64,000 bases of DNA, taken from contig NC_135769.1 of the NCBI RefSeq assembly GCF_052425735.1, positions 2,604,001 to 2,668,000 of the forward strand, given 5' to 3'. Under the pieces are notes generated by a model that saw only the letters and a list, made by a program, of their open reading frames with translations, was not told where the DNA came from and did not search any database. Below, piece by piece: positions 57,151 to 60,100 of the stretch. Positions within the stretch are counted from its first letter, which is position 1; every line of letters starts with the position of its first letter. This DNA is from Oculina patagonica (Eukaryota). The position numbers and the translations under genes were made by a program.

Positions 57151-60100
57151 ATGGATGGTACTCAGAAACGAAAAGGAAGCCAAGAGGGAAGCAGCTCTGC
57201 AAAACGTTCCCGAAACGATGAAGGGTCTTCAGGTGGTTTCGAGGAAGAGTTGGCTTCGCTCGGTGAAATCTCCATCAAAAATCCTCAATCCAAGTGGCCG
57301 AGGCCAGCAGTGCCGAAAATAAATGCCTCAACAGATAGCATCGTGTTTCAGCAGCTGGAGGTGGATAACTATATAGGTTTGTATCCTCAATTAGATGTTC
57401 GATCAAAGAAATTGTTGTGCATGTTTTGGAAGACGAGTTTTCGAAGCCTTCGCTAAAGGCTTCGATCTGACTGTTTTATTATGTACAGTTTGATGTGTTT
57501 GTTTTTATCGCACTTATTCTAATGTTGATCGAACCAAAATAGTTTTGGATATACGATCCACTGTTGTGACGAATCTATAAATTCTTCAAACCTTTTTGAA
57601 CCAAATCAAAGTAGTGAGGTTATGTATCAGTCAAATCGAAGGTTCAACATCCCCCCCCCCCCCGGGCATACCCCGGGCATTTGACGCCTTTTCCTTCCCG
57701 GGGGAAGGGAATTTGATAATCAAAGTCTTCCCGGGGGTGGGGAATTGATCCGACCACATAGGGGGTGGGAAATTTGAACGCAGACTTGATTTCTGGTTAT
57801 ACGTGTCCCAGTAAATGCACGTGGGTTTATAATCATGGCAGAGATGATTATCTTCTATGTATTTTATCTTCTAGTATTAACTATAGAACAGAGGAAAAAA
57901 TGTGTGTCTATTTTTAGAGCCAGTGTGCAGACAGGATTTTACGATCATAAGAAGCTACACAGATAAAACAGTCGTCTGTTTAACTATTAATTTTTCCCGG
58001 GGGTGGGGACATTTGATCACTGAAAACGGGCTCGTGGTGGGGCATTTGAACGGCTTTTTGGCCCAGGGAGGCGGGAATTTGAACGCAAATTTTCTAAAAA
58101 TTCAAATGCCCGGGGGGTTGCCCGGGGGGGGGGGGGATGTTGAACCTTCGATTTGGCTGATACATTATGAGAATGAAAAACTTGATCATCTTAGGAAAGA
58201 AGTCTTCACTTCAAACCTACGATGGGAATATTTTGGTAGTGTCTATACAGCCCCTTTCTGAATCTTCAATTTTTTCTATAAGTGGGAAGTTCAGAATTAT
58301 GGAATCATTAAAATTGAATTTGGGACCTGTCAGAATCAGTTTTTACTAAATCCCAGCCCTGTCAGAATCTGAAGAAAATCTGCCCTCTACTGGGAGAAAA
58401 TTTTTGGAACATCCCATTACATAGCATCAAATATCTGACTGATGACAAAATGTTTGATGGGAAAAAGTCACAGATAGCATAAAGCTTGGACATATTAAAA
58501 ATGTTGTGCATGCAAGATAAAATGAAGATTTAAAAGCTCTACGTGGTCAGGGCTTTACAACTGGGAAAAAGTTAAAGCATATTTTTGAAGGGTTTTCTGT
58601 GTACCAGATTTGGAGGGGGTGCTTATCTTGAGAATTTTACAGGAGCCTTAAAGAAAAGACAAGCGTCCCACATGTGGTATATCTCAATGAGTCACAAAAT
58701 GACAAAATCAATTCCAGTATATTATGCTTTCTGTTTTGTCTTGTTTAAGGTTCACCCCTGCAAGGGATGCCTGGTTCAAAAGTTGGTCCAGTGCCGATTG
58801 TTCAAATGTATGGAGTGACGATGGAGGGGAACAGTGTTCTGTGTCACATTCATGGTTTTGTGCCGTACTTCTTTGTCCCTGCTCCTCCAGGATTCCAGCA
58901 AAGTCACTGCAGTTTATTTCAGGATGGACTGAATAAAGCTGTGTTGAATGACATGAGATCTAATAAAGACAACATAAGCCAAGTAAGTGTTCAACATGCC
59001 AAATCCTCCTTGTGCTATTTCTGGTGACTTGTTGAATGGCAGTCCTCTCTTAGTTCCTTGCCCCCTGGTGGGGGATAGGGCCGGACCGGTTTCCGTAATC
59101 AGCTTGGTTTTACGGGATGGGGTGATTGGCCCCATGCCCAACCCCCAACCTGGAGGACCAGGGATTTTCTGTCGGGGTGTCCTTCCCTTAGCCACGGGTA
59201 CCAGATATTTAAAGGCGCTGGAAGCTCGCCTTTCACCATTGTCACTCAGCTACATCGTATTACCAGGGTCACCAAACGTGGAGGTGTGACATATGACTTG
59301 CTGGCAGAGCCTTTTTGAGACGGTAGGCATTTCTCGGCACTTACGAGAGCTACCTAGTGGCAACAGTAGCTCTCACCGGGACCTTTTACCAGCCTTTGAC
59401 CCCGTTGAATGGCAGTACTGCCCAAAAAACTTTTTTAATGTATTTCAGCGCTGGAAATTTTGTATTAATTAGTATAACATTTTTTTAGGCTGTCCTAGCT
59501 GTTGACTGTGAGATGAAGGAGAGTATCTATGGATATCATAACAACAGAAAGATCCCTTTCCTTCGCATCACAATGGCACTACCAAAACTTATCGCACCAG
59601 CCAAAAGGATCTTAGAGACAGGCTTTAAATGTGCAGATTTTCCAGAGAGAGGATATTCCACCTACGAGAGCAATATTGATTACGAGGTAAGTGTTGTAAG
59701 TGGCTAGACTCCTGATTGGGTGGGGTGAGTCTGAGCTCTGGCCTAGGCCATTGTGATGTGTTCTTGGGCAAGTCACCTTGCTCTTACAGTGCCTCTCTCC
59801 ACCCAGATGTATAAATAGGTATCGGCTTATTAAAAACTGGGAGTAGGGAGTTACCCTGTGATGGACTAGCATCCTATTCAGGGGGGAGTAGAAATATTCC
59901 TAGTCACTTCATGCTACAGAAATCAGAGTTCAGCACTGACCATATGGGAGGCTCCCCCAGGGTTTTTCAGTAAACAAGAGAACATGTCCATAACTTTTTG
60001 GGAACGTGGGAACAAAATCATATTTTAGGGAACACCAAAATCAAAGAAATATTTTTTAGGGATTTTTACGGAACATGGGAACACAAGGGAAATTTTGTTG

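Follow-up and report, generated by a model that had tools for sequence, protein, structure and literature searches.

In the stretch of Oculina patagonica DNA that we analysed (the window, 64,000 nucleotides), a 360-bp minus-strand insertion carries a predicted HDV-like ribozyme that starts at its first base. In our reading, an active, ribozyme-headed RTE gave rise to this insertion, a young copy that is internally deleted and was dead on arrival, probably through one template-switch event rather than through an amplified SINE-like lineage, and we put the probability of this reading at about 80%. Sequence comparison makes the HDV-like ribozyme at G1 well supported, because every helix is kept through compensatory changes in three diverged lineages; from the modelled fold we infer that it cleaves itself.

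The features of the insert and of its surroundings are listed in Table 1. The target-site duplication, read from the sequence, is a perfect 13-mer (ACTGCCATTCAAC), and its two copies bracket exactly 360 bp, so that G 59403 is the first inserted base and the repeat directly adjoins G1. The host gene is on the plus strand and encodes a family-B DNA polymerase, whose POL3_N and exonuclease exons are found from 59513 on. Since the insert is on the minus strand, it lies antisense in an early intron of this DNA polymerase delta-like gene. An initial annotation of the window had described both the 360-bp insertion with its perfect 13-bp duplication and the antisense position in an intron of a DNA polymerase gene, and was right on both. 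It had also proposed that such elements are released from host read-through transcripts by self-cleavage, which may hold for the family but, as host-gene read-through, is inapplicable at this locus, the copy being antisense to the gene. Because of this orientation and the lack of an ORF (neither an RT ORF nor any long ORF was found within the 360 bp), the window copy is most likely inert.

Table 1. Features of the insert and host gene (window coordinates; ribozyme positions are counted from 59403 = 1, minus strand) and junctions of short copies (last parent position of the 5' part/first parent position of the 3' part)
Feature	Coordinates	Strand	Remarks
5' target-site duplication ACTGCCATTCAAC	59404..59416	-	13-nt repeat next to G1
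3' target-site duplication	59031..59043	-	second copy of the 13-nt repeat
Whole insert, internally deleted RTE copy	59044..59403	-	parent 1-318 + 3402-3443; 99.7% / 100% identity to L031:67-3509
HDV-like ribozyme (predicted)	59239..59403	-	165 nt; predicted cleavage immediately 5' of G 59403; covariation; model R1, 208 bits
P1 5' strand GGGGUCA	59397..59403	-	positions 1-7; pairs with 59265-59271; in family B, C6-G becomes U-A and A7-U becomes G-U
J1/2 insert	59292..59396	-	105 nt; self-contained domain, closing stem + 9-bp hairpin; fold z-score -2.19
P2 5' strand UGUCAC	59286..59291	-	positions 113-118; pairs with 59240-59245
P3 around L3 UCCACGUUU	59272..59284	-	2 bp, CC 120-121 with GG 131-132 (family A); CC at 59280-59281 forms P1.1
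P1 3' strand UGACCCU, then GG of P1.1	59263..59271	-	positions 133-139, then G140-G141
P4	59251..59259	-	3 bp, UAC 145-147 with GUA 151-153, + triloop (family A); 5 bp in families B and C
J4/2 GCUGA	59246..59250	-	positions 154-158; putative catalytic C at 59249; C in 19/20 aligned copies
P2 3' strand GUGACA	59240..59245	-	positions 159-164
Remaining RTE 5' leader + first ORF codons	59086..59238	-	parent 166-318
RTE 3' module	59044..59085	-	last 42 nt; CCCCC/GGGGG hairpin; stop codon inside in parent
Next exon-bearing ORF, DNA polymerase delta-like host gene (context)	59513..59704	+	POL3_N
DNA_pol_B_exo1, host gene	60424-60600, 61338-61619, 62030-62398	+	domain matches
Junction, window copy	318/3402
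Junction, L002	316/3404
Junction, L019	317/3404
Junction, L009	329/3389
Junction, L010	321/filler/3406
Junction, L007	452/3403
Junction, L004	522/3286
Junction, L014	639/3400
Junction, L042	173/3404

The annotation had further noted that an RTE 5' block and an RTE-like 3' tail were joined in the absence of an RT ORF and of any evident tRNA head, and had suggested looking for an autonomous RTE that shares both ends. Such an element was found: the insert aligns with the two ends of a 3443-bp element (L031:67-3509), 318 nt at the 5' end and 42 nt at the 3' end, and differs from it at only 1 of 360 positions. The entire head is thus RTE leader, and a tRNA search of the insert found none. A second copy of the parent (L034; intact element at C9:24881316-24884762) has an intact ORF of 1077 aa with Exo_endo_phos, RVT_1 and DUF6451 domains. 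In the parent the first in-frame ATG is at position 269 and the stop codon is 5 nt away from the 3' end, which lacks an A-tail. Homologues with this architecture, proteins of ~1000 aa, are encoded on contigs of ~3.3-4 kb. With its single endonuclease/RT ORF, compact size, minimal 3' UTR and absence of poly(A), the parent appears by architecture to be an RTE-type non-LTR retrotransposon, the homologues found carrying no clade names. One copy of this RTE is rearranged (L046:1501-3042): parent 2665-3443 on one strand abuts 855-1623 on the other.

A first search for relatives of the element in the O. patagonica genome gave 447 candidates, and a covariance model of the head gave 68 matches. Among 27 head-bearing copies with unrelated upstream flanks, 18 started at the same G and the others differed in their first 1-7 nt; whether 5' ends coincide was a check suggested in the annotation. 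Target-site duplications adjoined G1 in L001, L004 and L009 (13, 13 and 11 bp, respectively). Together, the coinciding 5' ends and the duplications at G1 indicate that the template RNA begins at G1. RNA reads on the element amounted to 2-10 per raw RNA run and formed no 5'-end pile-up, a coverage too sparse to reveal an end at G1. One contig of run X2, a run whose type is a guess, reaches G1.

Starting from G 59403, all elements of an HDV-like fold named in the annotation (a full double pseudoknot with G1 as the first inserted nucleotide) could be read, and their order is that of the HDV-like nested double pseudoknot with a 105-nt J1/2. P1 has a G1-U wobble at its base (G 59403 with U 59265), the CC of L3 can pair with G140-G141 to form P1.1, and the C of J4/2 comes directly before the 3' strand of P2. 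A descriptor search, also proposed in the annotation and done here with a descriptor written from these very features, gave a single match when both strands of the window were searched, at 59403, and 0 in 10 shuffles, a result that is post hoc, partly circular and therefore weak. The plain MFE fold of the first 174 nt was no better than that of shuffled sequences (z +0.70), as expected for a pseudoknot. An Rfam scan gave nothing at E<=10 in the window region, and nothing at gathering score in the family B and C loci. This miss counts for little, because a pseudoknot is beyond what covariance models can describe and the core is interrupted by the 105-nt J1/2.

Stronger evidence for the fold came from comparing three lineages, i.e. 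family A (which includes the window copy), family B (~79% identical in the head) and the metagenome contig L068. Of the 29 modelled pairs, 10 had changed on both sides in a compensatory way between the A and B consensus sequences, 2 had a compatible single change and 0 were disrupted. In alignment counts, 96% of cells were paired, compared with 28-48% when the partners were slid, and double changes occurred in 12-15 pairs, compared with 1-4 in the slid controls. Compensatory changes were present in P1 (C-G in family A, U-A in family B), in P2 (A-U in A, G-C in families B and C; C-G to U-A in L068), in P3 (CC/GG in A, UG/CA in B, CA/UG in L068) and in P4 (A-U in A, G-C in B, with two extra pairs in B). 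The J1/2 insert, which folds on its own, covaries as well, with 5 compensatory pairs in its hairpin and 1 in its closing stem. J4/2 GCUGA and the UCC of L3 are constant, L3 reading UCCUCGU in families B and C; P1.1 is invariant across the compared lineages and so gains no support from covariation. Points that weaken the case are the shortness of P3 and P4 in family A and one C-A mismatch in P1 of the single copy of L068. Model R1, which was used for the alignments, omitted P2 and P1.1, so that P2 is an unbiased test; P1, P3 and P4 guided the fitting of alignments A3 and A5. With three lineages, the covariation represents few independent events.

The short copies of the element, about a dozen in number, each have their own junction (Table 1); the short element itself served as query when these loci were collected, so that the 5' breakpoints sampled are a biased set. 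Junction 318/3402 was absent from every other copy that could be read. The SINE-like family proposed in the annotation is not supported by this comparison: the window junction is private and those of its siblings differ, which points to independent deletion products of the same RTE. Most 3' breakpoints, those of at least 8 family A copies, fall within 3400-3406, which is the 5' edge of the 42-nt unit. TSD-flanked insertions of 41-44 nt that consist of the tail only start at the same place (3400-3403), where they would mark a sharp stop of reverse transcription. The clustering of 3' breaks where tail-only insertions begin ties the break to reverse transcription. A second RTE family, family B (L024-L030, L035, L036; 68% identical over the first 1.2 kb), carries the same ribozyme, and 5 of its 7 sampled head-bearing copies are short deleted forms. 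Their 5' breaks are all different (at 334-506) and in the four readable copies the homologous CCGGCCC box opens the 3' part. On the basis of these sequences, the short forms look like recurrent products of reverse-transcriptase template switching and not like an amplified family.

Two other origins of the junctions were considered and rejected. The missing segment does not have the GT...AG ends that splicing would leave, and no observed junction is the product of a simple deletion between the CCGG repeats at 315-318 and 3404-3407.

Individual loci add some detail. Only the last 41-44 nt of the RTE are present at L054:1499-1542 and L063:1501-1541 (as also in L043 and L066), with TSDs of 9 and 13 bp in L054 and L063. 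In L042:983-1564, J1/2 is broken by ~345 nt of foreign sequence and the 5' part ends at parent 173, just past the ribozyme; this is the nearest approach that we saw to a bare ribozyme-plus-tail element.

We propose the following sequence of events. The ribozyme in the first 165 nt of the parent would cut the transcript just 5' of G1 and so free the RNA from the upstream transcript, with the consequence that the template starts exactly at G1 whatever promoter made the RNA. The protein of the element would recognise the last ~42 nt, i.e. the hairpin module, and prime reverse transcription there. Very often the enzyme would stop at the 5' edge of this module (3400-3406). Stopping would yield the tail-only insertions of 41-44 nt, while continuing on the 5' part of the template would yield head-plus-tail mini-copies, each with a private junction. 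Template switching would thus be the cause of the deletions, and the window copy the outcome of one such event, at 318/3402.

It is conceivable that the short copies form a true non-autonomous lineage, SIDE-like or SINE-like, in which a short master RNA of ribozyme head and 42-nt tail, once transcribed and freed by self-cleavage, is moved in trans by the RTE protein; such lineages exist for R2 (PMC3414825). The junctions of L002 and L019 are indeed within 2 nt of that of the window copy, and the three differ in age, with 98, 96 and 99.7% identity to the parent, respectively; the closeness of the L001, L002 and L019 junctions (within 2 nt) leaves some room for common descent followed by small indels. 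Yet the junctions of any two copies differ, no derived substitution links the window copy to L002 or L019, and a probe across its junction gave at most about five full-span matches in the genome, none identical and with junctions all differing. As family B junctions are equally scattered, we regard such a lineage as unlikely. A genomic deletion that removed the interior of a full-length RTE after its insertion at this site is hardly plausible. It would likewise leave a head, a tail and an intact TSD, but would not account for the 3' breakpoints at 3400-3406 in at least 8 family A copies and at the homologous CCGGCCC box in family B, nor for the TSD-flanked tail-only insertions that begin at the same place; moreover, the copy differs from its parent at a single position.

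A different objection concerns the uniform 5' end, which could be a transcription start set by an internal promoter, with a structure that does not cleave and serves, for example, translation initiation or protein binding. In its favour, coinciding 5' ends would look the same whether set by a transcription start or by cleavage, conservation is higher in the 5' leader than in the ORF, and in L1Tc a promoter and a ribozyme share the same 77 nt (PMC3383444). What is conserved or covaries in the coral leader is, against this, the HDV-like catalytic core (G1-U at the base of P1, the UCC of L3, P1.1 and the C of J4/2), and PMC3774820, in the part that cites Ruminski et al. 2011, reports cleavage at the element junction by RTE ribozymes of this type. 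An internal promoter with a non-cleaving structure is thus very improbable.

Ribozyme-headed RTEs and ribozyme-headed, internally deleted elements have precedents. Passages in PMC3774820 and PMC6765202 that cite Ruminski, Webb, Riccitelli and Luptak 2011 state that RTEs have HDV-like ribozymes at their 5' ends, with cleavage at the junction of the element, and propose as their role the 5' processing of co-transcripts. The RTE ribozymes described there (PMC3774820, PMC6765202) resemble that of the coral in having the nested double pseudoknot at the very 5' end, with the first nucleotide of the element as the cleavage site (a predicted one in the coral). Compared with the published ribozymes as these citing papers present them, the coral family is set apart by the absence of an Rfam match and by a structured J1/2 of 105 nt. 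R2 ribozymes tolerate large J1/2 loops, and ribozyme-headed deleted R2 elements exist (PMC3414825). The latter, the R2 SIDEs (Short Internally Deleted Elements) of Drosophila, consist like the coral short copies of the 5' ribozyme of the parent and its 3' RT-recognition end, without an ORF, and both have a large J1/2 loop and compensatory changes in P1-P4 (PMC3414825). R2 SIDEs form homogeneous amplified lineages at one rDNA site that have diverged from their parent (PMC3414825), whereas the coral copies have private junctions, are dispersed and are nearly identical to the parent. The insert shows the SIDE-type combination of parental head and tail, lack of ORF and TPRT hallmarks, but among the copies read no set shares one junction, as SIDE-type propagation would entail. 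In Trypanosoma cruzi, the autonomous LINE L1Tc and its truncated non-autonomous partner NARTc have a common HDV-like ribozyme in the first nucleotides of their RNA (PMC3185411, PMC4035085). NARTc differs from the coral short copies in being an abundant and stable family of another LINE clade, with a 77-nt ribozyme that also acts as promoter (PMC3185411, PMC4035085). Among the papers searched, none ties HDV-like ribozymes specifically to corals.

LINE-tail SINEs (RTE/BovB- or L2-tailed; the UnaL2/UnaSINE1 stem-loop model) depend on the short, hairpin-bearing 3' module of a partner LINE. SINEs have a Pol III-promoter head derived from tRNA, 5S or 7SL, and occur in high copy number. The coral short copies have a similar hairpin 3' module but neither a Pol III head nor a high copy number; in the insert, the place of a tRNA, 5S or 7SL-derived head is taken by RTE leader.

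The device is thus already known, both as an HDV-like ribozyme on RTE and as ribozyme-headed deleted elements, and the coral case is a good new example of it, not a new kind of SINE. Its interest is that a stony coral has a family of HDV-like ribozymes with clean support and an intact autonomous parent that can be tested, and that the short form is a by-product of RTE replication instead of a new class of mobile element. From the clustering of breakpoints comes a simple and testable picture of the first origin of LINE-dependent short elements, and the recurrent, position-specific formation of mini-elements deserves most attention in further work. A bolder idea, which we put forward only tentatively and would not favour at present, is that a strong stop or template switch of the RT built in at the 5' edge of the 42-nt module continually makes mini-elements of ribozyme head plus tail, a standing supply of SINE precursors in no need of a Pol III promoter, and that RTE lineages with far more divergent proteins retain the ribozyme leader as a module or pass it between them.

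With respect to the leader, the 5' region (ribozyme plus ~150 nt) of L068:2530-2855 is 78-83% identical to those of L030 and L034 across these three RTE lineages, while their ORFs can barely be aligned as DNA, and the A and L068 proteins are 44% identical. The leader would be either far more conserved than the coding sequence or exchanged between RTE lineages. A relaxed ribozyme descriptor gave only noise on the other metagenome RTE loci, L068 being the one further ribozyme of this type. Three metagenome RTE relatives (L071:~560-800, L105:~3800-4030 and L118:~2270-2420) have a different conserved leader upstream of a common CCAGGTTGGGGGTTGGGC motif. This leader did not match model R1 and may be another structured RNA or ribozyme type. 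In the contigs of run X2, the summed depth was ~1600 on the 3' tail (window 59043-59096) compared with 13-120 elsewhere on the element, which fits very many 5'-truncated copies in the sampled organism.
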